Shown here piece after piece: positions 2,550 to 63,764 of a stretch of DNA of 64,000 nucleotides (its first letter is position 1; the number at the start of each line of letters is the position of its first letter). Source of the stretch: Mytilus trossulus (Eukaryota). The notes below the pieces were generated by a model. The model was not told the DNA's origin. It saw only the letters and a program-made list of their open reading frames with translations, and did no database searches. Where the stretch lies: the NCBI RefSeq assembly GCF_036588685.1, contig NC_086373.1, forward strand, positions 51,398,001-51,462,000, given 5' to 3'. Position numbers and translations under genes: made by a program.

Positions 2550-4674
2550 ATAAACGATGTTGACTTAGAATATATTACATCTTAGAAATTTTTTTAAAGA
2601 TGTTCAAATCATTAACTGATATATACAAAACATTTTACTCAGCCTACAGGGTGGACATATAAAGTACCGTATAACAGTGTGTTCCGATGCATAAGTAAAC
2701 ATAATGTTATGACACACTTTTACAATATAATACTTTAAATATGAATGGAATGATGTATAGATAATGTAAGACCATTGTCAACTGTTTACATGTTTTCTTC
2801 AGCAATTATGAAGGGTTTCTACGAGGGAACTAATGTTAGATGTTTTTCGTTTTAATATAAATAAGGCCGTTGGTTTCCTGTTTGATTTGTTTTACACTAG
2901 TCATGTATCGGGTCCCTTAAAGCTGTTCGATGCGAGTAAAGATTCCGTGTTTAAGGACGTACTTTGACCTATAACGGTTTACTATTACAAATTACGACTA
3001 AGAGAGGATGCATTGACACTCATTTCACATCTTCTTATGTCTATCTAGAAGATCTTTATAAAAGCAAGACATTAGCAAAGGAAATATCAATAATTCTTTT
3101 GATTTTAACGACACGTCAAAGGACGGAACTGGAAGTGCAGCTACATAAAAAGTTCTGAAACATATGTTGAAAATCGATAACTAGTATATTCCAAACATGA
3201 AAATGTCGTTTAATCACTACGAATCTATATAACCTTTTATATTGTTATATAATGCAGTGCAGTTTTTACTGAATGCTGTGGAGATATGTGTCATGATATT
3301 AAGTAGAGAAGGAAAAAGGAAAAATCACAGGTAACCGGGTTACCCGACTTCCTCAATTAGCAAACAATAATAATATACAGTATTCTATGACAGGCCTTGG
3401 AATATCAGAAATGTGAAGAAAAAAAATCTAAATCGAACAACAACTTCTGACATGAGCACACAAAGAGAGACAAGATCAGATAAACAAGTAGTAAATGAAG
3501 TAACACAACACGTTTTATCATATACCACTTATAATCATGTAGACCTCCATTGAGATTACCTTCAATAAGTAATTAAAATTGCAATAATTTTGGTTTCTAT
3601 GATGAATCACGAAATAGTTGGTTTTAAAGTGACGATGATTTTACACTGCTTTTCGCAAATTTTGATGAAACACATTAAATTAAAGAAATATTTCTTTGAA
3701 ACATGCCAGGCCTTTCTGAAAATCTATATTATAAAGTAATTTCAAATCTGGGTTCGAGTGAGACGGGTAATAAGAAGCTTGATGTTTCACTGGAGACCAT
3801 TATGGAAGACGCATAAACTATTCCTGAAAGGTCATAGTGACCTTTGCTCTTGTAAAAAGTTAATACTTATATTACCTGGTAAGAAAAATTGGATAGTTTT
3901 GTAGTTTATAAGTCATCCATTTTTTATTATGTTTGTGGTAATAAAGTTTTGTCTTGGAGTTTTTTAATGAATACAAGACAATTTTTTAATAAAACATCTT
4001 CTTTGTAAGACAAGCTGACATTTAATGACAATATATTATTCAGTATAATATGATTGCAGTAAAAGGTCAGACTAAGTACACTACAGATTACCCCGACATT
4101 TATCCTGAATAATACTTCATATGGCATTTTAGTTTTGCATTCAATATACAGCTGATATTTATTGGAAAATCTGGTCGCTTAAGTCAATAATTTGACTCGA
4201 TGTGTTGTAGTATTAATATGTGGATATTTATTTTCTAAACATTAATTCTTTAGCAACTGAACATTGACGGGGATGTCATTTGATAGCAACAATATGCTAT
4301 ATTGATGATTGCATAACACGCTTATGTAATACCATAAAAGCAGGAAAGTTCAATGCAAGAAAATTCCATTAGTTTGTAATATTGCACAGTTATGACATAT
4401 AAGCCATTAATGCTTCATTGCACACGTAATAATCAATGAATGAGAAAGAAAAAAGTAGTTATATGCACAAAACATAGAAAGAAAACTCTTACTCCAGTTA
4501 GATATACATGTACACAGAAATACTATGACGAACAGTTTGTGTAAATAAAGAAATAAAGGATAACATTTTATAAATGTTATGGGTCCAATGCATTTTTTCT
4601 ACGTTTACCTTCACAAGGTACGATGAAAATCAAATATTTAAAAGCCAAGTATGAATAAAATCCGAAAATGCAGA

Positions 4675-9630: not shown

Positions 9631-11388
9631 CGATATCTTATCGCCGACCTTGTTAAGTCTGCTAAAATTGCATGCATGATTAATTTTTAGGTTATCATGC
9701 AGTCGTAATTGAAGTGGCACATTTAATTCGTTGTTTCATTGCTCGAGTATTATTTTTTACATCTGCATGGTCAAATGTGTATTTTTTAAAAATAAATTTT
9801 AGATTTAGTTTTCAGTGTTATTTTTCCCCCCTTCATGTTGAATATCTATACTTATCAGTCGCATTTTAATGACGAAAAGGTATCAGAGGTTATGTGACCT
9901 CTTTGTTTTAAAAATAAAGGAAATATTTAAACAAAGAAAATAACTTTAAATTTGCAATATTAATGAAAATAAATACGGACATTATATACATTTTGTACTT
10001 TCATAATTAATTTTTGACGTTATTTTCAATAAATGATATATTTTGAAAAATCCTCGTTTTTTTACACCTATTTGAGGCACATACTTATGATTATGTTGCC
10101 ACGTCCTTGGTCTATCATAGACGTAAAATTTCAAGAAAGTGCTAAAAGTTTTTTTAAAGATTTTATTTTTAATTATTCTTGTTCAGATAGAATATAAAGC
10201 GCATTGTTTACATGAAATCTTATCTCATATTTAAACACAGCTGGTTACATCGTTTGACTCTAATTAAAATACTACGCATGTAGGTTAATATTAGCAGCTT
10301 GTAATCGTGTGCAAGAAAATATTATATCATAATAAATTTCAGATCATACGTAAAATATCTCTGTAGCAACTTAAGATGCTGATGCATATTCAACAGATTA
10401 GTAACCTATTGCGCATGTATTTGAAAGGTGGTCATAGAAAGAACAGAAATGTTCCGAATATCATCCGGTGTTCCGAAAGACTACATCACTCGTCCAATAT
10501 ATACTGCGTAAACCCTCAGGGGTTTACGCAATAATATGTATGAATATACGGAAGATCGGTGATGTATACAACGCCTGGTTACACAACAGACATGCTTTTT
10601 AATCATGAAAGTCAAATTCTATTTAATACATCATAATGTTATAATTGCATTCCATACATTCGACATTTTTCCTCCGAATGACCTCCTGTCATTCCATTGA
10701 ATAATTTCATCGACTTATGTCATGGCGAGGTCTTACATAAGAATACTTGATTAGACAGTCTTATATTCGGTTATCCTCCATCTTTTGAATGTAAATCTAG
10801 CACAGTAGGAGAAAGCTTACTTTCGGATGATAACTTTTCATGGCGCCAACAAGTTGGTCGAGGGATTCAAAGTTCTAATAAAAGCTTAATAAGAATTCAA
10901 AGATGTATAAACCGAGACAGAAGAAATCAATAATATTCGATCCTCTACTTTCCAGATTAAGCACATGCGTATTGCACTACCACTGTTCCTATATTTCTTC
11001 TGCTATTAAGACAATTTTATTTCTAATTTTGTTGGTATGTCTTTGTTGATGGAATAATGTTTATTATGTCTTAACCATGTTAACTGTGTCTATCCTGGAC
11101 CTTGGCCTAATATCTGCTTTGAATCCCTCCTGTCGAGCTGTGGTGCATTGTTTTTTCCAAGAAGGAACTCACTTTGGAGAAATAAACATGTACGGCGTTC
11201 GTGTGTCGGTGCAGTAGTTAAGCAAGTTCTTGGATACTCACATAATGTTCAACACAAATCAACTGAAGACTCAAACTTTCTCAAGCAAAATTGGTCGTTG
11301 ATGAAATTTGATATTCGTTTTGGATATCTTTTGTCATAATGCACTCAAGTACCTACACATCATTCAATTTGGCTTTCGTCCACATCAA

Positions 11389-29776: not shown

Positions 29777-31620
29777 ATGGCTCCAAAGAGAAGACCTGCT
29801 GCAAGGAAAAGGAAGACAAATCCTGCTTCACCTAGATCCCCTACACCACCACCACCATCGCCCGAAACACCAAACCCCGCCGAATTACCACCACCAGAGG
29901 CAAACCCACCAACCGTTGGTATCGAATATCCTGAGCAGCAACTTTCAGATACTGACAATGTTGATACAGCCGGCTCAAACTTTGCCTCAGATGAGGACGA
30001 TTTGATAGCCACTGCCACAACCAGTGCAGCAGTAAGTGAGATTTGCTTATTCAATGTCTTTGAAAATCACCTTTATAAAGCACATAAAAAATGTATGAGT
30101 TTCATAGACAGATATTTAGTGAAATTGGCAATTGAGGAACTGCATTTTATTCAAATAAATCATCAAAATACGATACATGCAAAGAAAATCTGCATTATTT
30201 AAATCAGATTAGTTGGACAGAATAGCAATATAATAAGATTAAAGTTAAAATAATTATAACACGGAATCTATATCCAGAGGCCAGTGTATAACTGTTGTTG
30301 AACGTATTGGCAAAAATGTAATTAAAAAAGATAACAATGTTTATGATACTTTTCAAACAATTGCAATCAGCATATGAACTTCTTGAAAGACCGGTCATTA
30401 TAAAAATATTTATGAGTGTATTTTATAGTAAAGTCGTTGATAGTTATCACGAAAATGGACATTGTGTATTTTCAGACTCGCAAGAAGAATAAACCCAAAA
30501 CTAAAAGTGCGAGAATACTGACGATCGAAGAGGAAGACGAAGTAATTGAGTGGTTAAAGTCAAATCGTTTTCTATACGACAAGACAAGTATTGATTTCAA
30601 AAATCGCGATAAAAAAGAGCGAACATGGCATGAAATGGAACAGAGGATGAAGTTGAATCCCGGTGATCTTCAAAGATGGTATACGTCCTTAAGAACCACG
30701 TATGTGAAAGAAGTAAAGAAAAGAGAAAACACCACACGATCCGGAGCCGGTGTCGGAGATGGTTTGCTAACATCTAGAACTAGCTGGTTGTTGGAGAAAT
30801 TCGAGTTTGTAAAACCCTTTGTCTGTCAGGCAAGAGGAACCAAGGGGTCACAGATCAAGAAACCTGACCGGTACTCAGACTGCAGTGAGTCATCAGTTCC
30901 ATCAATAACGACCACGGAAAGTACACCACAGTCAGTGACAACATCGTCAACTACAACAAAGATATCTGACTGCCTAGAAAAAGTTTCTCAGCAGTTAGCA
31001 GTCCCAAAGAGTGACATAGAGAAGACCTGCGATTTCCTTAGTACGCTAATGGCAAAGATGACCCCTTCCTGTCTGGAGGATTTTACGAATGAAACTATCT
31101 TCAAGGCAATGGAGTATGTTAAACAGTCTAAACAGGAACAGCGTCAAACACAACAACCGCCAAGGGATGATTTTATACAGCCATCCCAGCTTTCATCTAC
31201 ATTCACAGACCCTTCCCAGCAAGTAAATCGCCAAACATTACCTCAATTTACCCAATTACAACCTCAACAGCAAACTGCATTTGAAATAACAGGCCTTCAA
31301 TTAGACCGACAACATCATCCATGTCGTTCAGGCATCGTCAGCCGCAACAAATGTCTACTGATCGCGACTATATCATTGCACGCAACTTAGCAGCTTCGAA
31401 TCCGCCAGCTGACGTCCTTCAACAATATGGTCGATACCAATGGGCAGAACTGCAACCGACTAACTTGCAACCTATCTTAATGGGTCAACAGCAACAGACA
31501 GTATACTCAACTCACACTACAAGTCAGACACCAAGTGCTATTGAATCAACTGCGACAGATACAACATCAGTACTGACGGATGCTTATGAGACAATAAACC
31601 CAGAAACACCTTTCATATAG
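29777..31620 (+). pseudogene. Harbinger MADF/Myb-SANT DNA-binding protein (2 exons: 29777-30031, 30476-31620; frameshift near 31300-31325)
   Basis: Phase-0 intron GCA|GTAAGT...TTTCAG|ACT. MADF motif EVIEWLKSNRFLYDK...DFKNRDKKERTW...QRWYTSLRTTYVKE; WLLEKFEFVKPF. The Q/T-rich tail continues in another frame. Confidence 0.82.
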
Positions 31621-31899
31621 ATCTTCGACGTGAATGACTGTTTATTTTCATTTAGAAAAGATTTAGGAAAATCTTGAATAGAGAACCTTTAAATGTATAA
31701 CTATTTGTAGATTGTAGAAAATTTGTAGCTTTTTTTGAGAATGAAAAGAAATAGGTTAATCCACATTTGTTTATGTTGTTTATTTTAGGAACCAAAATTT
31801 TTAAACAAAACCAATAAAAAATGACATCGCTGAAAAGTGTAATATGCAAACGGAATCTTTTGCCATTACTTGGCGCCTGTGCCCTTTTCAATGTACATT

Positions 31900-32115
31900 T
31901 AGTTGTAAATCAAATTCGAACACACTAAGGAGCAATCAATAATCATAAACCACAAAGAAGACAATGCCATGGCAAATACACAACAGGCAACACAAATAAC
32001 AACATAACAAAAACTAAAAACAAAGCAACATGGACCCCAAACAAAAACAAAATGTGGTGAACTCAAGTACCCTGGAAGGGTTAGCAGCTCCTGCTTCAAG
32101 TGTGACAACCGTCGT
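31900..32115 (-). mobile_element. Penelope-like 3'-end fragment inserted between the Harbinger genes
   Basis: Reverse complement of the GAAGCAGGA..TGCTTACCCTTCCGGAG... motif seen at 40448 and 59665. Confidence 0.6.
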
Positions 32116-32462
32116 TTAGCTTAAATGTCAAAATCATTCTGAAACTCATTTATTGATGCTTATCAAAGTTTGTGTTTAAACTCAACCTATTCTTTTTTGC
32201 GCGTGTTGGGTCGTTGCCTCTTTGACACATTCCACGTCTTCACTCATATTCTATCCCTTAAATACCATTCCAAGTACTAGTATTGCAACAAATTTGTATT
32301 ATAAAGTGTATGTCAAACAAAGTTGGAGTGAATTATTCATTATGATAGAACCTCATTCTGAGATTTTTTATAGTCCTATCTATATCTAAATTTTTATTTT
32401 TAAACATTACATCAATTAACACAATACTGATGCATTCAAAACAATCAATGTTTCTGAACCAG

Positions 32463-34190
32463 TCAAATCATGTTCTCTTGCCAATCTAAGGCGCCTGCTT
32501 CCGAGTTGAAGTAATTTTTAAGATAGTTCCTTTGATCAATTCCAGCAGCGTTACCAAAATTTCTCTGATACCCTGGGTCTCCGTCGGTAAGTTGCGCACC
32601 TTGTCGCCATTGTCCCTCTATTAAATTATGATTGTTGTCTTCTTCGTCAGCAAACAGTTGTAGATCAGCACGTTTCCTTATCCGAAGTAAGTTATGAAGA
32701 GTAGTACAAGACAGTACGATTAAATCTACTGTTTCCGGCAGTTGTTGCATAGTTCCAATCAAAATCTGAAATCTCATGGCAAGAATGCCAAAAGCATTCT
32801 CCACAATTCTACGTGCACGGGACAACCTATAGTTAAAGATGCGCTCATCGTGGTCTAAACGTTTTCTTGAATAGGGTTTCATCATCCATGATCGGATCGG
32901 AGAGGAAATGCGTCATCGCCAATAAGAAAATAAGGAATATCTGTTTCACCATTTGGAAGAGGGGAGGGAGGCGGATGATCCAAAGTTCCATCTTCTAACA
33001 TTGGTCGTAGTTCCGAGTCCCTAAATATCTGGCTATCAGATGCACTTCCGTATGAGCCCACACTCAGCCAAATAAACTTATAATCTGCATCAACTAGAGC
33101 CATCATCACTGTAGAGAAGAAATGTTTGTAGTTAAAAAATAACGACCCCGAGTTAGGCGGTTTTCTTATTCTAATGTGCTTCCCATCCAAAGCACCACAA
33201 ACGTGTGGGAGGTTCCATATTCTTTCAAAGTCAGATGCTATACGCATCCAATCTTCCGTCGTAATCTCATCCGGCATGACTTCATCTTTGTATGCTAAGT
33301 AAATTGCTTCGCAGACTTTAGGCACAAAGAGTGATATGGAGTTCCGGGCAACACGAAAGGCATACATAAGATCAGCATACGTGGAACCGGTAGCCAAATG
33401 TCTGAGTGTAACGGCTAACTTCAGTCCTGGTTCAAGTGGTTCCCTGTAACGAGAAATATTTATCTAAACTTACAAACGCATAAAAGGTAAACTGGAAATG
33501 TGTCATACATTAGAATAACAAAAGACAAGACAGTTTAATATACCCACTTCCATATGAATACGAACGTTATTTGGGGCGTTACTAACACGTACTTTGTTCA
33601 CTTTGTATTAAATTTAATTATTTAGAAGCAAAGTGCTTAAGGAAAATTTTTTAAAAGATTGTTTTGCTGACCTTTTTACTTAGATATGAATTTCTGAAAA
33701 AACAGTTAGTATGGTTTTCTAAACTGACTATATCATGCGGAAAATCCAAGCCTCGTCCTTCGGCACCGTCGGATATTCATATGATATAGTCAGCATACAA
33801 AATAAAACTAACTATTATTCTTAATGTACATTTCTGTTTTATTTTGCTTGAAAATTGAAGTACTTACCTGAAAGAGGTAGAGCTTTTTCTGATTGCAGGG
33901 GTAATTCTGTCAAGTATCTCCCCAAACAAGTCGGCATCAACTCTTAAAAAGTTTCTGTAACCAGACGCATCTTCCCGGTTAAGCTCATGCAGGAGTTGGT
34001 CATATTGTCCAAACAAAGTTCTTCTGATGAGCCATGGCCTGCACCAAAATCTACGTTGAGTCCGCCTCCTCCTCCTCCTAAAACAAAGAGGAAACAGTTG
34101 TTGATTTTCTTCCTCTGCCCTCTGTGCCAGTGGAAGAAGAAGTCGAAGGAAGTTATGGAAGAGTAATAATTTATTTCTCTCGTAAGACAT
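32463..34190 (-). pseudogene. Harbinger DDE transposase (HARBI1-like; exons 34190-33868 and 33443-32463; one frameshift)
   Basis: Phase-2 intron TTCAG|GTAAGT...TTACAG|GGAACC gives REPLEPGLKLAVTLRHLATG. Catalytic motifs GALDGKH, GDDAF and RRIVENAFG. A 5-bp duplication at 32891-32900 shifts the frame. Confidence 0.92.
33704..33813. mobile_element. Palindromic mini-insertion in the transposase intron
   Basis: CTGACTATATCAT (33724-36) / ATGATATAGTCAG (33781-93) and outer AGTTAGT / ACTAACT inverted repeats. Confidence 0.55.
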
Positions 34191-48694: not shown

Positions 48695-48915
48695 GACTAT
48701 CGACGGATTTGTAATAATATGAGCAACACGACGGGTGTCACTTGTGGAGTAGAAACTGCTTACACTTTCGGAGAACCTGAGATCACCCCAAGTTTTTGGT
48801 GGGGTTCGTGTTGCCCATTCTTTAGTTTTCTGTGTTATGTATTGTGTATTATTATTTGTCTGTTTGTCTTTTTTCATTTTTAGCCATGGCGTTGTCTGTT
48901 TATTTTCAATTGATG
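48695..48915 (+). mobile_element. Penelope-like 3'-end fragment
   Basis: Matches 39960-39989 joined to 40410-40610. Confidence 0.7.
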
Positions 48916-49111
48916 TGTTTTGCCCCTGTTCTATATCGAACACGTGTTCTTTGTAGCTAAATGTATTTAATACATAACTATTTCGTTTTCCACCATCTAT
49001 TCACTGCCTCGGTTCACTGTTAACCAAAATATATTTTACAGGTGAAAACAAAAGAACAAGGAACAGAAATGTTTAACCAAGATGACCTGCATTTATAAAT
49101 AAGCAGCGTGT

Positions 49112-50346: not shown

Positions 50347-50809
50347 ATGAAAAGTAAATGGAAAAACTTTCTTAACCTTCAAGACAAAGAATACCATGTA
50401 TTTGCCAATTATAGTGAAGATGATGGTAACTTGGTAAACGGATTGCTACAGCCCTTCGAGAATAGAAATTGTTTGTTCTACAATCCTGATCGTGATGGGC
50501 TACCAGGTCAACCAATCATGCGCGGTCATATCGAAAAAGGAATGGAACAGTCCAAGATTTCCATGCTTTTTATCACAAAGAATTTTCTGTCTGATGAATT
50601 GTGTATGTTTATGGCCAATCTTTCTATTTGGAAGTACATGAAAACGAAAGGAATTCATCGAGTATTACCAATCATCCTTCAGCCATGTAAAATACCCAGA
50701 TACCTGAAAGTCTTAAACTGTATTCATGTTTGGAAATACGCAACTACTAGATCAAGTAATATGATGTACCAGACGCAAGCTATTACTCGATTAACGAAAG
50801 CCATGCTAG
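50347..50809 (+). CDS. TIR-TRAF-zinc-finger protein A, coding exon 1 (TIR domain)
   Basis: Box1 YHVFANYSEDD, box2 PDRDGLPG, FLSDELC, RVLPIILQPCKIPRYL. Acceptor TTTTAG at 50337, phase-1 donor CTAG|GTAATA. Confidence 0.88.
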
Positions 50810-50850
50810 GTAATATTTCTAATACACTCTGTTTGAAAATATCATAATAT

Positions 50851-51800
50851 TTAGGTCTTTCCACTTTTGTTTTTCTTCTGATTATTTTTTTTCTTCTGCC
50901 GTCTGAGATGCTTTTTTGTCTTACAACATATCGAATGGATTTTTGGCCAATGATGTTGTACAGTAATGGGGGTATCAAAACTCACCCTGTGTGACCGAAC
51001 ACTTATTCTTATAGGAGTTATCTTCCCGTGTCCCCTTTTTCTTGTTATCGCTATATCTCTAAAACCGTAAAATATTTTAACAAACTGTTTTTTCACAAAT
51101 TGTTTGTCTGCTTTTAAGAATGATTGGTTAATTTTGACTGAAGTGATCGTAAGACATCTTATGGGAGTTATTTCCCTTTGAAAATTTAAGATAGGCGATA
51201 TGTTGGATTAATTCGTACGTTATAAGTCGTAGAGGCATAGTCTTTTGATATGAAGTCCTTGGTCCATTTGAAGGGAATTGAGGTCAAGGTCAAAGGTCAA
51301 GGTTATGTTATAAATTTTGAATTTTGCTTGTTATCGTTATTCAAAAGAAACTGTTACAGTAAATGATATGATGTGTTTGCCAAATAACTGTTTACAATAA
51401 GGTGCAACTTCAAGCTATTCAAGTCGAAGAGTTTTGGTTAACCCTTATAGGAGTGTTCTCCCCTGATGTATTTGAAATCAGTATGTCTCCACAATCATAC
51501 AAGTGATTGACCTGGGGTCTTTTGATTTGAGATGACTGACCTTTGACCTCAAAATCGAGGTCCAGGTCAAAGGTCAATTTTTAACGTTTTAGATTTTTAC
51601 CTTTGCTAAAAAATCTTTCTGGTTCATTATTAAACAATTAAGTCTTCTGCATAAACCTATAAATCTAATTTTTTTCATATCAGTTTGATTTACCACATTA
51701 CATCTACACGAAGTGACATTTTCTAACAATTTGTTTTCAATTTCTTTCTTATTATCGAGGTGGAAAGACCTTCAAATGTTCTCTGAAGAATTGGTTTTTA
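50851..51800. mobile_element. Helentron/HINE-like non-autonomous element
   Basis: Subterminal inverted repeats AGGTCTTTCCAC (50853) / GTGGAAAGACCT (51760) followed by a small hairpin; CAAGGTCA motifs. Absent from the paralog B intron. Confidence 0.65.
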
Positions 51801-52033
51801 ATTTTATTTATATTTGTATGCCCTGTCTATCATAGTGAGTGTGCGTTATATTTTCTGGTCGTTATGTCCGTTCATGTATGTCCCTTACCAGGTGAACAGT
51901 CTGATTTAAATAGAAATTATGTGTTTTTTTTTTAAGTAAGGTGGTTTCCATCGGAATTGAAATTACACCAATTTGTAACTTACAGCACATGTACATGATA
52001 ATATGTGATTGGGATTCACAAAAATAATATATG

Positions 52034-52775
52034 ACTAGTGCACACCCGTGATATCGCGGATCCGTGACTGAATTAAAGTATATAACTATGCGCAAGTCTT
52101 ATTTTAGTACAATGTATTAGTATTGTCATCTGATAAAGTCATGCCGATTTTAAGATACACAGTTTTCTCTGCTTTCAAATCTTTCTGTTTGAACCCGGCG
52201 AACTGTCCAGAACTTATCAATTATTGGTAATATTAGATATTTGGAAACGCGACAAAAGGTCCTGGAATGGGGTAGTTTTTAATCAACAGATTTGTCCTAT
52301 ATTAGTTATAAATAAAGTTGAATTCTTTGATTCGCTGACAAATTGAAAACTGTACCTATACGCCTTATTTTTAGTCCAGATTTTAAGTATTCGTATTGTT
52401 AACCTCTTAAAAGGTCTTACTAATAAAAATACTACAATAGTTAACAATTTGACAATTTAGTAGTGTCAACCCTGTGATAATGACCCGTGTATATAGCATA
52501 TTAATCCTGAATATACCGTTTGGTGATGCGCCTGTCAGATGCGGAACGTACAGATAAGGTAAAGGTAACAGGTGAATATACTATTGGTATCGGTATCGGA
52601 CTCGACCCGGAACTTCTTAATTATTGGCAATATTAATTACGTGGATAACAAAAGGACCTGGAGTGATGTAATTTTTAATCTACACCTTTGCACTATATTA
52701 GTTGTATTCTTTGATTCGTCGATTTTACGTGATGACGGCTGATAAATTAGACCTCGTCTTTTTAGTATTATAGAT
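52034..52775. mobile_element. Helentron/DINE-like non-autonomous element
   Basis: ACTAG...CACCCGTGATATCGCGGATCCGTG hairpin at one end and TTTAGTATTATAGAT at the other. Diverged internal repeats of about 140 bp at about 52205 and 52605. Confidence 0.65.
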
Positions 52776-54813
52776 AACTTAGGGTTGAAACCAGATTTTG
52801 CGGTTCACAGCAAATCCAGGAATCCTAAAGATCAACAAATGTGATAGGGTTGGTGTGGATGGTATCGTATAGGCACAGATTCTGGTGTATTACTTAATAT
52901 ATCAACACACTTATTTGTTTATTTGCTGAGATTGAGGCAGATATATTTTGGTTTTCTTTCGAGGTCGCGAGAATATCTAACCATCAATAAAGAACGATCT
53001 TTATATGGAGAGAACATACCTTTTTTCTGCAAACTTTCAATTTCATTTAAAAAATATTGCTTCTACACATAAGTAAAAATGATCTCGATAAACAATTTGC
53101 ATAAACTGACGATAAAAACTGCAATTATATTATCAGGGAAATAATACCTTTCTGTGGTTGTTTAATCAAACGTAAGTATAAATATTTGGCGGGATTCGTA
53201 GTTGCGTTAAAATTATGATGAAGCGTTGAAATATTCAAATTCATATCGTTATTAATCAACTTTTTATTCTAATGTATGTTTTAAAATATGACACTGATAT
53301 GACTTTATAACTTGATTTTATATTTTGTTGTTTGTCTTATTTGGTTTCTGTCTCTTTGGCATGTTCAAATCATCTTTTATTCTTTTTACTTTAAGAAGAT
53401 TATTAAGTTTAAGTACACTAGAAACGGGAAGTAATTGTAGTTACATGATAAAATAGGTACTTTGCATAACAAAGTATCTACTTCGCATAACGATAAGTAT
53501 ACCCAATTTAAATACTATGGATTACTTCTTATACAAAAGGTTAAGCAAACAAAACAGGACAGAATTTAATTGAGTAAATACGGAAACACGAAACATAATT
53601 AAGAAACCACAGTTCATAAGTATGAGAGCACATCATGGGCCATAAAATGAATCAGCACAATTAAGCCAGATAACTGCTTATAATTAATATATTAACCAAC
53701 TACATGATACAATGATATAGGCAAGTAGATTATATCAAGATGAAAGGACTAAAGGCTCAAATAGCCAAACTGGAAGAAAAAGTATGGCTTATGAAAATAC
53801 TTAGTGAAATAATTAAATGAAAATAGAGAATGCGGAAGGTAAACCCATTAAAAAGGGTTGTAAACTTTGTCTGAATTTAATACGCTTTTTTTAATGTACC
53901 TACAAAATGTTGGCAGGACCCGAAAATGGGGGATATACCTCCGAACAACTTCACAGTGATAGGTACACTGTTCTATCTGTGAAGTTTGTAGGTCTGGATC
54001 TGGGTTGACAATTTTACGAGGAGTTGATTACACGAAATAGGGAACGTCTTTTGTAAATTTTTCCTGAAAAATATGCCACAATTATCCAACATTTGAGAAT
54101 AATTAAAAAATTTGTCAAACAATTACATATGATCAAGTGTGCAACCTTTCTGTGGAGTTTTATGGATCTGGATTGAAAACTGTATGAATAGTAGATAACA
54201 CTAAAAAGGTACCCATTTTTCTCTTCCAGCTCGACCCGGCAAAATCAAAAGGTTATTACAAACTTCACTACATGAGAAAGACAGAGCGTTCAATACAAGT
54301 TTCAAACACGTTTAGTAACTTGTTGTTATACTTAGATCTTGTTATCAAGAAGAGTCTGAGTATTGCATTTGAGCGCTTTGTTGCTTTGCGTAACTACAAC
54401 TCATTGAAATAATAACTTTTTATTGTTGCTTATACGTGGTTTCGTCCAACAACACTGATCCAAAACAACTTACGTGGATATGAACAACTAAGCAACATTA
54501 GCTTCATTGGTTTCGTCGATAAAAAGACGAACATTCATTTTGGAAGTCAAATTTTGCAAAAGTTAAATGTAGATGGTTTCATTAATCTTGAAAAAATGGA
54601 CGGGAATCATGTTGAATATTTTGTTGAATGATGTAGTCGTCATTTTAAAAAGGTTTTCAATTGTTTGGTGAGGGCTTGCGTTCGTCTTGCCATCTGAAAC
54701 TTTCAAGCAAGTGTACGTACTAATGGAAACTATTTATACCTAACAATAAGAGTTTTAAACACTTTTGTATCACGTTTGGTGTTTCTTACAATTATAATTT
54801 TATTTGATTATAG

Positions 54814-55783
54814 ATCCACCACCAAAATTTAGACGAATAAGATGGAATGGAATAAAAACACTGACATGGACACGTAATATTATTGAAAAAGTAAAGAAAT
54901 CGGCATTAAAAGAAAAAGCTTCGAATCAGTCAATACACAACATCAATCTATTTCAACTATGGCGATTAATAGGTGTATTAAAACATTGCTTTCTAAACTG
55001 CCGGTACGGTCATTGTTCATTTGCTTGTAGTGGTAGAGAATTCACAAGATTTATAAGCCATGCAGAAGGATGCAGATATAGAACAATCAAGTGTTCAAAC
55101 AAAGCTTGCCAGACTTTCCTTCCGAAATGGTGTGTCGATAAACATGTCGAGGAATGTCCACTAACCAGGATAACTTGTCCATCAGCTGGATGCGGAAAGA
55201 AAATCATAAGATGTCGAATAGAACAACACTTGTTTAAATGTCAACATCGCACTATTTTTTGTCCGAACAACCATTATGGATGTGCCCAACGACTTACACA
55301 AAAAGACGCCTTCAAACATTCAGAGATCTGTTTGTTTGCTTCATTTCTTTGCAATAAATGTGGTCAAACAATAATGAAAAAAGACATACATGAACATGAG
55401 AAGTATTGTATAAAGTCTGAAACAAAATGCAAGCTTTGTAAAAAAACGATGATTCGTGAAGAAGAGCTTTTTCACTTGGACGATTGCGAAATGGCGGTTG
55501 TCTCTTGTCCAAACATAGGTTGTGGAAAAACAATGGCCAGGCACAAAATTTCAAAACACAAGTTGATATGCTTACTCACGAATATCAGTTGTCCAAATTC
55601 TGAAAGGGGATGTAACGCCAGAGATAAAAGAATAAGTATACAAAATCATACATCATGGTGTCCATTTAGACTCTCACAATGTGAGTTTTGTGGGAGAAAA
55701 TTTATTTTCAAGACACTTAATTTCCACATTAAAAACTGTCAGACGAAGAAGATATGTCAATTATGCGGATCGTCCGTTCCTAG
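54814..55783 (+). CDS. TIR-TRAF-zinc-finger protein A, coding exon 2 (TRAF-type zinc finger array)
   Basis: Repeated C-x2-6-C-x11-14-H-x3-C units. Acceptor TATAG|AT completes G+AT (Asp) in phase with the TIR exon. Phase-2 donor AG|GTAAAG. Confidence 0.88.
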
Positions 55784-56240
55784 GTAAAGATATTTAATGT
55801 AAGCTACGAAAAGGCAAATCGTCAAAATGAACAAATAAGACCATGGGCGACATAAAATTATGCACTATAATCTACAAAGCAGAAAATACACGATACAAAT
55901 CGTATCAAGTATTTGGAAGGGTAAACTGTTCCTGTTTTCAAGGGTTTTATTTGATAAATTGTTGACCACAGCTGAAAGATGTATTGTAAACAAGGATTGT
56001 GTATCAAGCTGAAATACTATTTTAAGTTACATTTTACAGACTTATTGTCACTTTTTTACAATCATTTCCGGTCTAATTAAGGATACGTATACAATTTAAT
56101 TACAAACATAAGATTTAAATCTCGAGGTTATGGGTCAAGGTTATAAAATTGTAAACCCTCAGCTCTTTGTGGTATTAATGTACAATTCTTTTGATATAAT
56201 GAATTTATTTGTATTTTTGTATTTTTGTATTTTATTTTAG

Positions 56241-56376
56241 GTCAACTTGGGGAACTCACGAGCGTACATGTCAAAAGAATTACAGGTCTTCACCTGATGA
56301 TGGTTGTCATGTGAGAACTGGCACATTGGAAGACAACAAAGAGTTATGTATGGAACATGATCACACTCCTCCAGTA
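56241..56376 (+). CDS. TIR-ZF protein A, coding exon 3
   Basis: TTTTAG|G completes the last finger (CQLCGSSVPRSTWGTHERTC). Phase-0 donor GTA|GTAAGT. Confidence 0.8.
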
Positions 56377-56837
56377 GTAAGTCTTCTGAATTATACTTTT
56401 TGAGAGTGAAAATGTGCACAAACGGGGATAATTCTATATAAAAGGCAACCAGCCATTTTTATTTCGGGTGTGATATGTGAAATGACAAAAGTTTTATTAC
56501 CTTATGTTGAGTAGGAATTTTATTGATCACAAAAATTAATTGGTTAAACCAAACATGGAATACAAATGCTTTAATGATAACTTTACATGCAGATAAACAA
56601 CCTCTTCAAGTGTCAACATGCCATCATTTGAAAATATTCTTTTTGCGGACCACTAAATATATAATTATGTATTTACTTTTTTTCCGTGAAAATTTACGAC
56701 TTTTTATATTACCGACACTATTAACTGATTAAATTTTGAAATGCTATTTTCGCAAGAACTATTTACTTTAATTCAAAAAGATTAATTATGAATGGAATAC
56801 ATCGAGCGTTCTTTCTTTATGTTGTTTTAATTTGCAG

Positions 56838-56904
56838 GAGCAACCTGGTTTAGATTTACCAGATGGCCCAGCACTTTCTCCCCCGCATGAAGAGCTTCCT
56901 AAAA
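56838..56904 (+). CDS. TIR-ZF protein A, coding exon 4
   Basis: TTGCAG|GAG... EQPGLDLPDGPALSPPHEELPK. Phase-1 donor A|GTAAGA. Confidence 0.68.
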
Positions 56905-57119
56905 GTAAGAACATATTTTTTTTATTTGAAAGTTTTCGTCTAATTTGTTATAAAAAAAACAAAGCAATTTTATCTTCAGTAAAATTTATTTCCAAGTCTA
57001 CCACGAATTTTAAGCGTCTGGTCACTTCCGTCTAAAGGAAATTATAAGCCAGGAGCTACTCAAATGGTCGTCTTTTGTTATCAATATTCAATCTCAATTA
57101 GTTCCTGTTTGGTTTATTT

Positions 57120-57350
57120 TTTTATTTTAGAATTGTGTACGATTAAGAACTACACAGCGTATAGACAGTTATCTGGTTCTCACCACTTGGCGTTCGTAGT
57201 CCGTCGTCGTCGTCGTCGTCGTCGTCACTAACTTCAACCAAAAATCTTTTATTTTGACCTAACTGGTCAAATACCAGCAGTTTTCAAAATGTATACGACG
57301 ACCCCTCATGCAAACCAACAAACCAAAATATCAAACATGGCCATAATCTT
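57120..57350. repeat. Degraded Helentron-like fragment with (GTC)n microsatellite (57202-57226)
   Basis: GTC run preceded by TTCTCACCACTTGGCGT, an arrangement typical of HINE heads. Confidence 0.45.
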
Positions 57351-57509
57351 CCGCACTATTTTAGGTCTTCATCTTGAAAGTCCGATTAATATACATGTAA
57401 ATGAAACGAAATATAGGCGTAACTTTAGATACCCAAAATCACAAAAACCAAGAGTTTATATCGTCATAATATTTTTTGATATAACTAGATTGCAATTGAA
57501 TAATTTTAG

Positions 57510-57706
57510 GTGATCCTTTAGCCAATCATCATTCTACTCATGGAACAAGTACAGTTTCAATTCGATGGCGACCTAGAACCAGTAGTGACAGTCCAGATAA
57601 TGGTGGACCGCAGACTTTGGAAGATTTTCTAAAAGAAATTCTCCGCACGAATATCAATGTCTATTCGTTCGTCGAAAAGAAACGAAAAGTTGAATTCCGA
57701 CATTAA
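57510..57706 (+). CDS. TIR-ZF protein A, terminal coding exon 5
   Basis: TTTTAG|GT in phase. Open frame SDPLANHHS...QTLEDFLKEILRTNINVYSFVEKKRKVEFRH* (TAA 57704-06). Total CDS 1833 nt = 610 aa plus stop. Confidence 0.65.
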
Positions 57707-58079
57707 ACATTTATATCTACAAGACACCTTTTTATTGTTATGATTTTTAGAAATGTCTTAGTCGCAAGAATCCCATCATGGCAACACAAAGAACTGCTTC
57801 GTATTAACTGTCCTAAAGTTTATCTTTTGATGTTATAATAAGTTTAACTGATGCCAATCAAAAAACTTATCTTGAAAGAACTGAAAAAATTGATTCAAAT
57901 ATATTAGTATATCGTTAACAAGTCAATTATTTCTTGTGATGCATACATCATGAACGTTTGGGATTCAATATTTGTAATCATATACATAATCATAAAATTT
58001 CGAAGCTCATAAGTAAAGGAAGCTTTTAAAATTGTGGCCAGTTAATCGCAGAGTAAATATGTATATGTACTGTGCAGTT

Positions 58080-58400
58080 ACACCACTATCCCAGGATAGG
58101 AGGAGTTGGCGCTCATTCAAACTAGTTTTACTTCGCCACATTCTGAAAGTGCCTGTCCCAAGTCATGAGTCTCTAACTCAGTAATTATAGTTTGTTTTAT
58201 ATCATATTTGTTTTTCATTCATTTTTGTACATAAATAAGGCCGTTAGTTTGTCGCATTTGAATTGTTTTACATTTGCCATTTCCATGCCTTTGATAGTTG
58301 ACTATGCTGTCTTAAAAATTGTTGAATGCCGTACGTATAAGTTAAATTTTGTGTCTCTTGTGAAAGGTTGACTCATTGGCATTGATACCACGTCTGCTAA
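58080..58400. mobile_element. Degraded family B SINE-like repeat
   Basis: GCCTGTCCCAAGTCA...ATAAGGCCGTTAGTTT...GCCGTACG, the reverse orientation of family B. Confidence 0.6.
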
Positions 58401-59640
58401 TTCGTATAATAGCTAAAAATTTCAGTGTACGTATTATACAAGTCATTGTTATTAAAGACCTTTTTGACCAATATTTTGCACTTTCGTTTGTTCCAATCAG
58501 GTAAAAGATTAAGAGAAGCGTCTATCATAAAAAAATACTTTCAAGGAAAATAAGTCAGTTGAGTTTTTATAGGAGTTAGAGCTCTTGACTGTTGATTTTT
58601 ATCCATTTTGGAGTAAAATTCTTAATTATTTGGTAAATATAGAATAACTGATCAGCAAACTAAGATCGGCAATTCCGTCAATATGGCTAAATTGGCAGCG
58701 AATTACGTATATATGAAATTGATCTGAATCTGCACCTGTTTTACTTATAAAGACATTGTGTAATTACATGTTAGGCATAGTCAATCAGATAGCATATTGT
58801 TACTTAATGATGCATGTTTTATTATTATGTATTTTATGGTTTTCCCCGCAATTAATGCTGTTTATCATTTGTCTTAGGGAAAATATGTTTTTGTTACTAC
58901 AGCGCTAGCATTTATAAAACTTTCTGCAATAAAGTATTCATGTATTCATGCAAGCATTTAATCTACTTATCGCTAGCCTGTCAACAGTTATGAGTTTGAA
59001 CCAAGCTCATGATAAGATAAAACTCCGAACTTATTTGACTTAGATTGCCACTTTTTATGCTGAATGTCGGTTGTTTCTTCTGGAAACACTGACGTCTTCC
59101 ATCATGCATATATTGAGTATATGGATTTAATATAAATGTAGAACATCAGCAAGTTCTTGTTTTGTTCAATGCGGGGGAAATTACATGTACAAAAAGGACC
59201 TTAAATTTACATGTTGAACATCTGTAGCTTTGAATAAAAAATCACACTGTTTGATGAGCCAGACACTTGCGCATTATAACAGCACAGAATTTCAATATTG
59301 TCAGATCATCATAGTTATGCAAATACAACATGCAATTTTAAAGGTAAACCGTTATCGGTAAATGCGTTCACAGCACCACCCATGCAATGGTTTCTACCCG
59401 AAAAGGTGTGTCAAGTGAATGTTATCAATACCAGTATAAAGATGGTGTTGCCCTGCTACAAATAAAGATATATCAAATACCATGTCCAACCTCCATTGGC
59501 TATGACCTTTTCATCAGATTGATATTGCAACTTACTACAGATTTAAAGACGCAGGGTGAAGAACTGTATCCTGACTTTCCTCAAGCTAGCCATCCTTTGC
59601 TAGTAAGGTCATACTCAAACGTTTAATTTATACATTTACT

Positions 59641-59871
59641 GTGGAGCTGGATCTGCTTACTGTGGAGCAGGATCTGCTTACCCTTCCGGAGCATCTGAGA
59701 TCACCCCTGGTTTTTGATGGGGTTCGTGTTGTTTATTCTTTAGTTTTCTATGTTGTGTCACGTGTACTATTGTTTTTCTGTTTGTCTTTATTATTTTTAA
59801 GCCATGGCGTTGTCAGTTTGTTTTAGATTTAGGAGTTTGACTATCCCTTTGGTATCTTTCGTCCCTCTTTT
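59641..59871 (+). mobile_element. Penelope-like 3'-end fragment
   Basis: High identity to 40445-40653. Confidence 0.8.
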
Positions 59872-59881
59872 ACAGCTTATG

Positions 59882-60081
59882 AGCTTATCAAATACTACAA
59901 AATGATAAGTTCTCGTCAGCTCAACGTATCAGGAAGGATAACTCTGTACTATTTTAACAACTAGGAAGTATTCAGGATATCACGAAATTTGGTGGTTGGG
60001 TAATCCTTGAGGGATAATCTAGGTTTTCATTACTTTAATCTTCATTTTGATCTAAAAACGACCTCGGATAAAACTAGTGAT
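59882..60081 (+). promoter_or_regulatory. Putative promoter / non-coding first exon of TIR-ZF copy B
   Basis: Paralogous to 49112-49302. Ends at AT|GTAAGT. Confidence 0.6.
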
Positions 60082-60752
60082 GTAAGTTTGTTAATATATG
60101 TTCTTATCTTTTTTAAATATTTTTAAGTTAAATATTTGTAAAATAAGTATGGGATAATTATTTTCGGTTAGAAATAATACATGTATATCGGATGTTGATA
60201 AATATACCACAGGTAAGAAGTATGTATCTTTTGTGTGTGTATTGACTAAGTTAAAAGATGTAACGTTGTGTGTTTATCTGATTAAAATGCATAATTTCAA
60301 ATATACCATAATCTAAAATCACACGACCTTTACACAGATAAACAGTTATATAAAAAAATATATTTACTTTAGAGTCCAATTTTGTTCTATGTGTTTTCGA
60401 TTTTTAATTTATACAATTTTTTTTTGGAGGGGGGGATGTTAAGAGGTTTTAAGAAACACATCATTGAGCAAAAATATGATCACCTTTTTGTTTTGGAATT
60501 TCGATGAATGATTTGTCATGCCGACATATGTAATCTGTCATAAAAAAATGTTCCCAACGTAGGCACACCGTTATTATTACTCAGTATAGATTTAACAGGA
60601 TCTGTTTGATAAAAAATATCAAATTGTAATAGCATGCACTTATGAGAGTACACAATTTCTTTCTGAATATGCCTTTTTAAAGAACACTTATATTTTTGTA
60701 TTTCCGTATTAATTTGAGTGTTAAACAACAATTTTAGATAAACACAGACACA

Positions 60753-61215
60753 ATGAAAAGTAAATGGAAGAGCTTTCTACAACTCCAAGACAAACAATAC
60801 CATGTCTTTGCCAGTTATAGTGAAGATGATAGTGGATTGGTGAACGGCTTGTTACAGCCCTTCGAGAATAACAATTGTTTGTTCTACAACCCTGATCGAG
60901 ATGGGTTACCAGGACAACCAATCATGCGCGGTCTTATCGAACAAGGAATAGAACAGTCCAAGATTACCATGCTTTTTATCACAAAGAATTTTCTGTCTGA
61001 TGAGTTGTGTATGTTTATGGCCAATCTTGCTATTTGGAAGTACATGAAAACGAAAGGAATCCATCGAGTGTTACCAATCATCCTTCAGCCATGTAAAATA
61101 CCCAGATATCTTAAGGTTTTAAACTGCATCTATGTCTGGAAATACGCACCTTGCAGATCAAGTCATATGATGTACCAGACGCAAGCCATTGCTCGACTTA
61201 CGAAAGCCATGCTAG
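60753..61215 (+). CDS. TIR-TRAF-zinc-finger protein B, coding exon 1 (TIR domain)
   Basis: Same 463-nt length and splice sites as copy A. About 89% amino-acid identity. Confidence 0.88.
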
Positions 61216-62714
61216 GTAATATTTTGTATATACTCTGTTCGTAAATACAATAATTCTCTTATTTATGTTTGTTTTATTTTATTTTGATAAGGTACATATA
61301 GTTTTCATCGAAATTGAAATCATATCAACTTGTTACCTAGAACACATGTGACACTGACTTGTAAACCTTACTTGAATCTATATGCTGGTGTAGGTGTTTG
61401 TTTTGTTTGGTTGTTGTCTCCTTTATTCATTTTATTTAAAGGATTGTTAAGTTTAAGTACATAAGGAAAAGGAAGTAATTGTAATATCATGATAAGTTAA
61501 TACAACAAGTTTACGTATATATTTCACATAGAGATATTTGTACACATCGATTACTACATTTATTATTACAAAAGGTATTGCATATAAAAAAGGACATAAT
61601 AATAGGGTACACAAGTATGTAAACATGAAACATAATAAACAAAAACAAAAACAGTTTCATATGGCCTACACAAACCTTTTTGAAATAAATGAAATAGAAA
61701 AAGAAGAATGGTTTAGGAAAAAAAACCTCCTTAGTGAGAGGTGGAGAAATGAAATAGGTTTGTAAATCTTTGTTTGAAGTTCGAAAGAGATAGATTGAAA
61801 ACGAAATTTAATTCACATTTTATTTTTTATTATAATGTTCCTGTAAAATGTTGGGGAAATTCCCCCAAACAACTACATATTAGCAGTTGCACTGTTCTAT
61901 CTGTGCTGTTTTCAGGATCTTTATTGAAAACTTTAAGGGGAGTTATCTTTACACAAAATAGGGAATAAAAATTTGAGAATGGGAAAAAATATTAATACAA
62001 GTCTATATCAACAAGTCATGAACATCATCAAGTAAGCAACCCTTCGATGATGTTTTATAGATCTGGATTGAAAACTGTAAAACACTGAAGCCCCACTAAA
62101 TAGTTACCCATTTTTCTCTACCAGCTCGTCCAACTTAGTGCAATCCGGCTTAAACAACATATTATCACAAACAACACTTAGTCTACCTGAGAAAGAGACT
62201 GCGTTCAGTACAAATGCAAAACCAGATTGTAGCTTGTTATTTCATGTTTTGGTTAGATTGTGTGATCATTATGAGTTTGAGTGTGGTATTTAGACACTGT
62301 GTTGCTTTGCCTAACTACAACTCTACAACTCAATGGAAAGATAACAACTTTTTTTTTACAGCTAGTACAGGGTTTTATTGATCAAAACCAAGTCATATGG
62401 TATGAACAATCAAACAACTTTTGCCTTCGTAGACTCCATTGAGTAATTTACGAACAATAAACAATGGAATTCAAATTTTGCCATAGTTAAAAGTTCATGT
62501 TTAATTATTCTCAAAAGAAAATTGAATGTTGTGGTAGATCATAATGAGTAGTGTTTTTTTATAAAGTTTAACGTAATTGCTTGGGTATAAGTCTTACCAA
62601 ATGATTTCGATCTAAAATGTGCAACCAAGTACTAACGGAAACTTTGTCAAGGAGTTTAAACCCTTTTGTATCACGTTTCGTGCTTCTTACAATTATCATT
62701 TTATTCTATTTTAG

Positions 62715-63684
62715 AACCACCACCAAAATTTAGACGAATAAGATGGAATGGAATAAAAACACTTACGTGGACGCGTAATATTGTCGAAAAAGTAAAGAAA
62801 TCGGCATTGAAAGAAAAAGCTTCAAATCAGTTAAAACACAACATCAATCCATTTCAACTATGGCGATTAACGGGTGTATTAAAACATTGCTTTCTAAACT
62901 GCCGGTACGGCCATTGTTCGTTTGCTTGCAGTGGAAGAGAATTCACCAGATTTATAAGCCATGCAGACATATGCAGATATAGACCAATTAAGTGTCCAAA
63001 CAAAAATTGTCAGACGTTTCATCCCAAATGGTGTGTCGATAAACATGTCGATGAATGTCTTCACACCTGGATAACTTGTCCATCAGTTGGATGTGGAGAG
63101 AAAATCAGAAGATATCAAATAGAACAACACTTGTTAAAATGTAAACACCGTTCCATTATTTGCCCAAACCACCATTTTGGATGTGACCAACGACTTACAG
63201 GAGAGAACGCTTCCAAACATTCAGAGAACTGTTCATTTGCTTTCATTCTTTGCAATAAATGTGGTCAAGCAATGACGGAAAAAGACTTGCATGAGCATGA
63301 AAAGTTTTGTGTAAAGTCTGAAACAAAATGCAAGCTTTGTAAAAAGACGATGCTTCGTGAAGAAGAGCCTTTTCACTTGGACGCTTGTTTACTGGCGGAC
63401 GTCTCTTGTCCAAATATAGGCTGTGGTTTAACCATGAAAAGATACAAAATTTTACAACACAAGTCAATGTGCTTACATGCAAATATCAGTTGTGCAAATT
63501 CTGGAAGGGGATGTAGAACAAGAGACAAACGAATTAATATACAAATTCATATAGCATCATGCCCTTTTCGAATGTCACAGTGTGAGTTTTGTGGGAGAAA
63601 ATTTCCTTTCAAAAAACTTAATTCCCACATAAAAAGATGTCAGACGATGAAGATATGTCCATTATGCGGATTGATGGTTCCAAG
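62715..63684 (+). CDS. TIR-TRAF-zinc-finger protein B, coding exon 2 (zinc finger array; gene presumably continues beyond window)
   Basis: Same 970-nt length as copy A. TTTAG|AA acceptor and AG|GTAAAA donor. All Zn ligands conserved. Confidence 0.88.
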
Positions 63685-63764
63685 GTAAAATTATTTTAAT
63701 TTATTTTAAGAAAAAAATTAACATCATTTAATACCAAAATAAAAAGTATACACACAATATACAT

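Follow-up and report, generated by a model that had tools for sequence, protein, structure and literature searches.

The closest described systems to the proteins considered here are TRAF6, the RING-less finger proteins TRAFD1/FLN29 and XAF1, the TIR proteins MyD88, MAL/TIRAP, TRAM and Hydra TRR-2, and the ecTIR-DC proteins. TRAF6 carries beta-beta-alpha, C-C-H-C TRAF-type zinc fingers arranged as a rod, and works in a signalling context shared with TIR adaptors. The family described here has the same kind of rod but differs in having an N-terminal TIR, in lacking a RING, a coiled coil and a MATH domain, and in having 10-12 fingers, where TRAF6 has fewer. TRAFD1/FLN29 and XAF1 also carry arrays of TRAF-type fingers without a ligase or MATH domain, and modulate innate immune or apoptotic signalling; however, they have no TIR, and their similarity to the family falls below cut-offs, so that it demonstrates no homology beyond the common type of finger. 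MyD88, MAL/TIRAP, TRAM and TRR-2 share with the family the TIR fold, box 1 and the RD..PG BB loop, with TM-scores of 0.69-0.84, but the partner of the TIR in this family is a finger rod, and not the death domain or lipid-binding motif found among MyD88, MAL/TIRAP and TRAM, and there is no transmembrane segment. The ecTIR-DC proteins resemble the family in being cytosolic bivalve proteins whose TIR is joined directly to a different signalling module, and 6wt6 is among the Foldseek matches. Passages of one paper describe ecTIR-DC proteins as widespread in invertebrates, absent in vertebrates, and hypothesised to be adaptors or regulators (PMC6321704). The TLR and TIR-protein repertoires of bivalves are very large and their downstream wiring is poorly known, and a conserved protein with a receptor-type TIR joined to TRAF-type fingers is a concrete, testable candidate for a link or a brake in that pathway.

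The window, a stretch of 64,000 nt of Mytilus trossulus DNA, contains one complete gene of this kind (LOC134725066, copy A) and the first two exons of a second (LOC134727000, copy B), both on the forward strand. In the list of open reading frames the TIR and the zinc fingers are separate, at 50347-50847 and 54804-55787 in copy A and at 60753-61244 and 62666-63688 in copy B. An earlier note, made from the DNA alone, had proposed that they are joined by GT-AG introns, that the first two exons measure 463 and 970 nt in both paralogs, and that copy A splices through five coding exons into 610 amino acids. Each of these proposals was borne out. All the GT-AG exon boundaries are present when the splice sites of both copies are read directly in the DNA, and the RefSeq protein XP_063444679.1 (610 aa) is 100% identical to copy A in all five exons, with exact boundaries. 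Exon 1 of copy A (50347..50809, 463 nt) holds the start codon and the TIR, ends in phase 1, and matches residues 1-154 of the RefSeq protein at 100%. Intron 1 follows (50810..54813, 4004 nt, GT..AG), and then exon 2 (54814..55783, 970 nt), which encodes a conserved basic linker and most of the zinc-finger array. Finger 10 ends in exon 3 (56241..56376, 136 nt), which also holds a degenerate remnant of finger 11, while the disordered tail is encoded by exon 4 (56838..56904, 67 nt) and by exon 5 (57510..57706), which includes one short predicted helix and is coding to 57703, with the stop codon TAA at 57704-57706.

Copy B corresponds to the RefSeq protein XP_063447461.1 (673 aa). Its TIR exon (60753..61215, 463 nt) matches residues 1-154 of that protein exactly, and is followed by intron 1 (61216..62714, 1499 nt, GT..AG), which is about 2.5 kb shorter than its counterpart in copy A, and by the exon for the linker and zinc fingers (62715..63684, 970 nt). 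The remaining exons, 3-5, are found past the end of the window, at 489-642, 1236-1323 and 3540-3886 of the 10 kb after the window, where they too match XP_063447461.1 exactly; the gene spans about 7.1 kb. The tandem paralogy and bivalve origin suggested by the earlier note are both correct, and the two neighbouring genes are annotated in RefSeq on this same contig of Mytilus trossulus. A block upstream of copy A (48743..48920, forward strand) is 82% identical to a block upstream of copy B (59661..59838, forward strand), duplicated alongside the gene. This block is part of the tandem duplication unit and a candidate 5' UTR or promoter. The spacing of the repeated blocks between the two copies is unequal, at 10406 versus about 7900 nt. 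Rfam at its gathering scores found nothing in the window.

A third paralog was found 9 Mb away, at 60.51 Mb. Its TIR and finger exons are 44% and 34% identical to those of the tandem pair and measure 472 and 967 nt, and its intron positions, its phases (1 and 2) and its split Asp codon are those of copies A and B. When the finger exon was compared with its own genome at E<=1e-8, the matches were the three family members only, so the zinc-finger array was not recently copied from a TRAF gene. The earlier note's description of a TIR sitting where the RING of a TRAF would be is accurate as to layout, but such a layout does not in itself show descent from a TRAF.

Comparison of copies A and B shows purifying selection on both exons. 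The TIR exon has a dN/dS of 0.19 and the finger exon one of 0.34; no 40-codon window reaches 1, there is no signal of diversifying selection, and all zinc ligands are kept. This selection, together with the recurrence of the TIR-finger arrangement in the diverged paralog and in other species, argues that the arrangement is not due to chance. The arrangement was also found in transcripts. A public contig of 2193 nt encodes a 673-aa protein whose identity to copy B is 94% in exon 1 and 98% in exon 2, and which the tree places as the sister of copy B, with support of 99/100. As the gene extends over about 7.1 kb, the contig can only be a spliced one. Relatives of 520-719 aa are likewise found on contigs of 1.8-2.6 kb; for these short Logan contigs, splicing was judged by comparing the length of the contig with that of the CDS. 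The transcript evidence is for copy B only, and for copy A the junction between TIR and fingers is supported by the gene models of three species, by conservation and by selection.

Proteins with both a TIR and zf-TRAF are on record from Mytilus edulis, M. galloprovincialis, M. coruscus and M. californianus, and also from Solemya, Sinanodonta, Saccostrea, Pinctada, Mya, Mactra and the brachiopod Lingula. All 10 of the 10 N-terminally extended matches carry TIR_2 and zf-TRAF, and these come from six bivalve genera and Lingula. A profile search for the family returned close Mytilus relatives only. The family is bivalve-wide and may occur in other lophotrochozoans too. The novelty of the architecture, which the earlier note had raised, therefore does not hold, as both genes are in RefSeq and the family is present in other bivalves and Lingula. 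No description of a TIR + zf-TRAF protein was found in the open literature, and the architecture goes unmentioned in the amphioxus and Aplysia immunome papers. A survey of bivalve ecTIR-DC proteins from 2017 (in Dev Comp Immunol) reportedly defined numbered families by homology and domain organisation, and no TIR + zf-TRAF family is among those named in passages of the open papers which cite it. Genuine but uncharacterised, the genes are a variant on known modules, and since genes and architecture were already in public databases, and the role proposed below is read from sequence, the value of the finding is limited.

For copy A the earlier note had described a TIR followed by a basic linker, an array of 10 TRAF-type fingers and a low-complexity tail, with neither RING nor MATH, and this layout is correct. 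The TIR exons taken singly exceed the Pfam cut-offs, with 30.3 and 40 bits for TIR_2 and 25.1 and 26.6 bits for TIR; full-length copy A is just under them, with 26.8 bits against 28 for TIR_2 and 21.1 against 21.3 for TIR. The best sequence matches of the TIR in the PDB are TLR2, TLR6, TLR1 (to E=8e-5) and Hydra TRR-2. Foldseek aligned the predicted TIR to TRR-2 (4w8g) with a TMt of 0.84, and to the MyD88 and MAL filaments with 0.69-0.74. Box 1 and the BB-loop motif RD..PG are present. The domain resembles the TIRs of TLRs and MyD88 and is most likely a non-catalytic TIR of the signalling type.

The zf-TRAF model scores 73.6 and 63.6 bits in full-length XP_063444679.1 and XP_063447461.1, and the finger exons taken singly also exceed the Pfam cut-off. 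By pattern, copy A has 10 fingers and copy B has 11; the earlier note's label "C3H" gives their composition correctly, and their exact type is the TRAF C-C-H-C finger. In structure the finger region comes closest to the N-terminal domain of TRAF6 (3hcs, 5vo0), and matches to UBZ-type fingers are below the Pfam cut-offs. Neither RING nor MATH turned up in the two full-length proteins at E<=0.01, nor in 18 relatives at E limits from 0.001 to 0.01. In the predicted model of copy A, residues 215-488 have a pLDDT of about 88, and the C-terminal 120 residues are below 50 except for one short helix. Copy A has no finger 11 and is missing most of a C-terminal motif which is otherwise kept in the family, and because of these losses copies A and B may differ in action. 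A four-residue motif resembling a TRAF-binding site, picked out by eye in the copy A tail, was dropped because the M. edulis orthologue does not conserve it. A search of the ESM Atlas gave no usable match.

Taken together, LOC134725066 and LOC134727000 are intact tandem paralogs, and we would give slightly better than an even chance to the reading that they encode a cytosolic TIR adaptor or regulator with a docking rod of fingers. The analysis itself establishes the gene structure, a single reading frame spliced through TIR and fingers, the conservation of their junction, purifying selection and the domain folds. In the proposed mechanism, the TIR would enter the assemblies that activated TLRs and MyD88-like adaptors form through their TIRs, and the rod of 10-12 C-C-H-C fingers would offer a docking surface to partners from the ubiquitin system or the TRAF pathway, by analogy to the fingers of TRAF6 and of the RING-less TRAFD1 and XAF1. 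We know of no single established ligand of TRAF-type fingers. Toll-like receptor signalling might be promoted or damped by such a protein, as the sequence is compatible with either.

If it is damped, the protein would be a dominant-negative inhibitor or decoy, whose TIR caps or poisons TLR/MyD88 assemblies while the rod sequesters TRAF-pathway partners, in the manner of TRAFD1/FLN29 or the short MyD88 isoform. Such a protein would differ from the adaptor or regulator proposed above solely in whether its effect is positive or negative. Without a RING the protein has no E3 activity of its own, and vertebrate RING-less TRAF-finger proteins are mostly negative or apoptotic regulators, both of which speak for a decoy. 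One finger is also weakly similar to the TRAFD1/XAF1-type finger (PF21366) and to the FLN29 structure 2d9k (E=0.0077), but the PF21366 matches, at 19-20 bits, stay under the cut-off of 27, and inhibition and activation look alike in sequence. We consider inhibition somewhat unlikely as the main function, while still giving it appreciable weight.

The proposal of a cytosolic adaptor or regulator can also be carried further. The family may be a lophotrochozoan invention which, by way of its finger rod, wires TIR assemblies straight to ubiquitin or TRAF-pathway machinery and bypasses MyD88-IRAK-TRAF6, with the outputs of the paralogs differing by finger number (10, 11 or 12) and by the C-terminal motif. 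This is a speculative extension, and we think it decidedly unlikely to hold in full.

Less probable again is a cytosolic sensor, in which binding of nucleic acid or of a pathogen product by the fingers and linker would trigger oligomerisation of the TIR. The linker is indeed basic and conserved, and the fingers diverge faster than the TIR, with a dN between copies A and B of 0.144 in the finger exon versus 0.063 in the TIR exon; however, the dN/dS below 1 in every 40-codon window counts against a sensor. Among the Foldseek alignments of the rod are some to CTCF and similar DNA-binding proteins with many fingers, but with TM-scores of about 0.1-0.2 and a very high rmsd, so these matches reflect no more than the repeated beta-beta-alpha units. 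TRAF-type fingers are known, moreover, for protein contacts.

An enzymatic effector would cleave NAD+ like the TIRs of SARM1, plants and bacteria, with the fingers regulating that activity. In its favour, the Pfam model TIR_2, which also covers SARM1-like and bacterial TIRs, outscores the TIR model, and AbTir and plant TIRs are among the Foldseek matches. The NADase catalytic Glu would nevertheless be expected three residues past the conserved Cys in helix alpha-C, where both copies have Met and the family varies between Met, Ala, Glu, Asp, Leu and Gln, and the closest structures are non-enzymatic receptor and adaptor TIRs. An enzyme is therefore very improbable, and the NADase reading was rejected on the absence of the catalytic Glu.

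That the genes are true TRAF6 orthologues, or separate genes or pseudogenes joined through mis-annotation, is hardly credible: the first is suggested by database names, those of AYA22142.1 and of some M. edulis models of the family (TRAF6 or TRAF4), but was rejected because RING and MATH are missing, and AYA22142, which a comparison table treats as TRAF6, is only 19% identical to pigeon TRAF6 (PMC7491236), while the second was rejected because spliced contigs, conserved intron phases and purifying selection oppose it.

The name of AYA22142.1 has a consequence of its own. This GenBank entry from Mytilus coruscus, filed as "TNF receptor-associated factor 6" with no genome contig on record, falls in a 90%-identity cluster with copy B, with which it shares about 93% identity in exons 1-2 as well as the TIR + zf-TRAF architecture. 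Judged by its domains, AYA22142.1 is not a TRAF6. Analyses of molluscan TRAF6 which use it compare non-orthologous proteins, and at least one TRAF6 comparison is affected.

Copy A (LOC134725066) and copy B (LOC134727000) are tandem paralogs on the plus strand, and the four ORFs from which the earlier note assembled them are all present in the window's ORF track. When the exons were tested one by one, both upstream ORFs scored above the TIR_2 and TIR cut-offs of Pfam, and both downstream ORFs above those for zf-TRAF and zf-TRAF_2. The exons of copy A were read directly in the DNA at 50347-50809 (463 nt), 54814-55783 (970 nt), 56241-56376 (136 nt), 56838-56904 (67 nt) and 57510-57703 (194 nt coding, then TAA). 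The first two exons of copy B, read the same way at 60753-61215 and 62715-63684, have the identical lengths of 463 and 970 nt that had been reported for both copies. Its exons 3 to 5 lie past the window end, at 489-642, 1236-1323 and 3540-3886 of the 10 kb directly following (L021, plus strand), for a start-to-stop span of about 7.1 kb. The TIR and finger ORFs had been said to be joined by phase-compatible GT-AG introns, and every proposed junction could be read in the DNA: each intron runs GT..AG, with phases 1, 2, 0 and 1 in order, and the phases around exons 3 to 5 of copy B equal those of copy A. Intron 1 interrupts an Asp codon in copy A and a Glu codon in copy B. The proposed product of copy A, five coding exons and 610 aa, is existing public annotation, since RefSeq XP_063444679.1 of Mytilus trossulus (610 aa) matches every one of the five exons at 100% identity, with the boundaries as proposed. 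XP_063447461.1 (673 aa) matches copy B exactly over all five exons.

Intron 1 is 4004 nt long in copy A (50810-54813) and 1499 nt in copy B (61216-62714). The spacing of conserved blocks within it is shifted by about 2.5 kb between the copies, which suggests an insertion in copy A or a deletion in copy B. Intron 4 of copy A contains a short CGT trinucleotide run at 57200-57226.

The TIR-finger junction is confirmed as real by four lines that agree, of which the transcript line concerns copy B, while copy A stands on gene models, conservation and selection. The transcript line comes from P0170, a public 673-aa protein encoded on a contig of only 2193 nt; given the span of about 7.1 kb of the copy B gene, that contig is necessarily spliced. 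P0170 shares 94% identity with copy B in exon 1 and 98% in exon 2, with the two contiguous at residues 154-156, and it is the sister of copy B in a maximum-likelihood tree (support 99/100). Relatives of 520-719 aa are likewise found on contigs of 1.8-2.6 kb. Farther along the same contig, 9 Mb downstream, is a third, diverged paralog (L022 3487-9273; G000:C1:60511486-60517272), with 44% identity in the TIR and 34% in the fingers. Its exons 1 (472 nt) and 2 (967 nt), separated by about 4.3 kb, keep the order and the phases; here too an Asp codon is split, and a Pro-Pro-Lys-Phe linker start follows it. Gene models of other species carry the same fusion. Copies A and B differ by a dS of about 0.35, and their dN/dS is 0.19 in the TIR exon and 0.34 in the finger exon, staying at or below 0.54 in all 40-codon windows. 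The fingers have a dN of 0.144 versus 0.063 for the TIR, and all zinc ligands are kept.

The earlier note did not recognise the architecture, but it is already in databases: both genes are in RefSeq, and the same fusion is on record elsewhere. Queried with the finger exon in a full HMMER scan, 1.84 billion representatives yielded 123 proteins at E<=1e-10, and 13 of the best 150 matches also match a TIR profile made from the three own-genome copies. TIR_2 and zf-TRAF occurred together in 10 of 10 tested members. The sources are Mytilus edulis, M. galloprovincialis, M. coruscus and M. californianus, the other bivalves Solemya velum, Sinanodonta woodiana, Saccostrea echinata, Pinctada imbricata, Mya arenaria and Mactra antiquata, and the brachiopod Lingula anatina; the bivalves named span all major bivalve lineages. 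A midpoint-rooted tree groups the A-type proteins of the three M. edulis-complex species in one clade; its sister clade holds the B-type proteins together with those of M. coruscus and M. californianus, which would tentatively date the A/B split before the M. edulis complex.

Public labels of family members are mostly uncharacterised. M. edulis CAG2202934.1, CAG2202937.1 and CAG2202938.1 are labelled TRAF6 or TRAF4 although they have no RING or MATH, and the same is true of M. coruscus AYA22142.1, labelled TRAF6, which clusters with copy B and has no genome contig on record. A table of TRAF6 identities in a published paper gives AYA22142 as 19% identical to pigeon TRAF6 (PMC7491236). Its membership in the family is a useful correction to its GenBank label. 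None of the open papers searched was found to describe a TIR + zf-TRAF protein, and the family is best regarded as an uncharacterised variant combining two known immune modules.

The proposed protein anatomy held up. Counted by pattern, the C-C-H-C fingers number 10 in copy A, as had been claimed, 11 in copy B and 12 in the M. californianus orthologue of the third paralog; the basic linker appears in the family alignment as a conserved motif after the TIR; and Pfam finds neither RING nor MATH in copy A, copy B or 18 relatives. AlphaFold, given an alignment of 16 family sequences, produced a model (mean pLDDT 69.7) in which the TIR (residues 1-155) is confident at pLDDT ~80, the linker (160-200) is low, the fingers (215-488) form regular beta-beta-alpha repeats at ~88, and the tail is disordered except for one short helix. 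A short motif near the C-terminus is common to most family members. Copy A lacks most of it and has also lost half of finger 11, including its first two cysteines; its exon 3 lacks 18 nt relative to copy B. The copy-A orthologues of M. edulis and M. galloprovincialis (610-611 aa) show both losses, on the strength of which the functions of copies A and B may differ.

The TIR is nearest to TLR2, TLR6, TLR1 and Hydra TRR-2 in a PDB sequence search. In Foldseek, its closest fold is that of TRR-2 (TM 0.84), followed by the TIRs of MyD88 and MAL filaments (0.69-0.74). It carries box 1 as well as the RD..PG motif of the BB loop. The position of the NADase glutamate is Met in both copies and variable across the family, which makes a scaffold far more likely than an enzyme. 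The finger region best matches the N-terminal domain of TRAF6; FBXO30, FLN29/TRAFD1 and the TRAFD1/XAF1 finger model match weakly, below cut-off. Searched against its own genome, the finger exon matches only the three family members at E<=1e-8, and by sequence the array is no recent copy of a TRAF gene.

TIRs of receptor or adaptor type signal through joint assemblies with other TIRs, and the TRAF-type fingers of TRAF6, TRAFD1 and XAF1 serve as protein-contact surfaces in immune signalling that depends on ubiquitin. In the simplest view, the TIR of this cytosolic protein would partner activated TLR and MyD88-like TIR assemblies, and the finger rod, having no catalytic module, would be a docking rod brought to them. 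From these properties we are led to lean towards an adaptor or regulator, with either sign of effect. A pure inhibitor or decoy seems rather unlikely, and a sensor that binds a ligand through its fingers is unlikely. An NADase effector is very improbable given that Met and the variability at its position. A true TRAF6, or a mis-joined gene, can be virtually dismissed.

Over the complete 64-kb window, no Rfam family reached gathering scores. A PIF/Harbinger-type transposon occupies 29777-33397, with its DDE_Tnp_4 transposase split over adjacent minus-strand ORFs (32463-32885 and 32882-33397) and a MADF DNA-binding ORF on the plus strand at 30416-31390.
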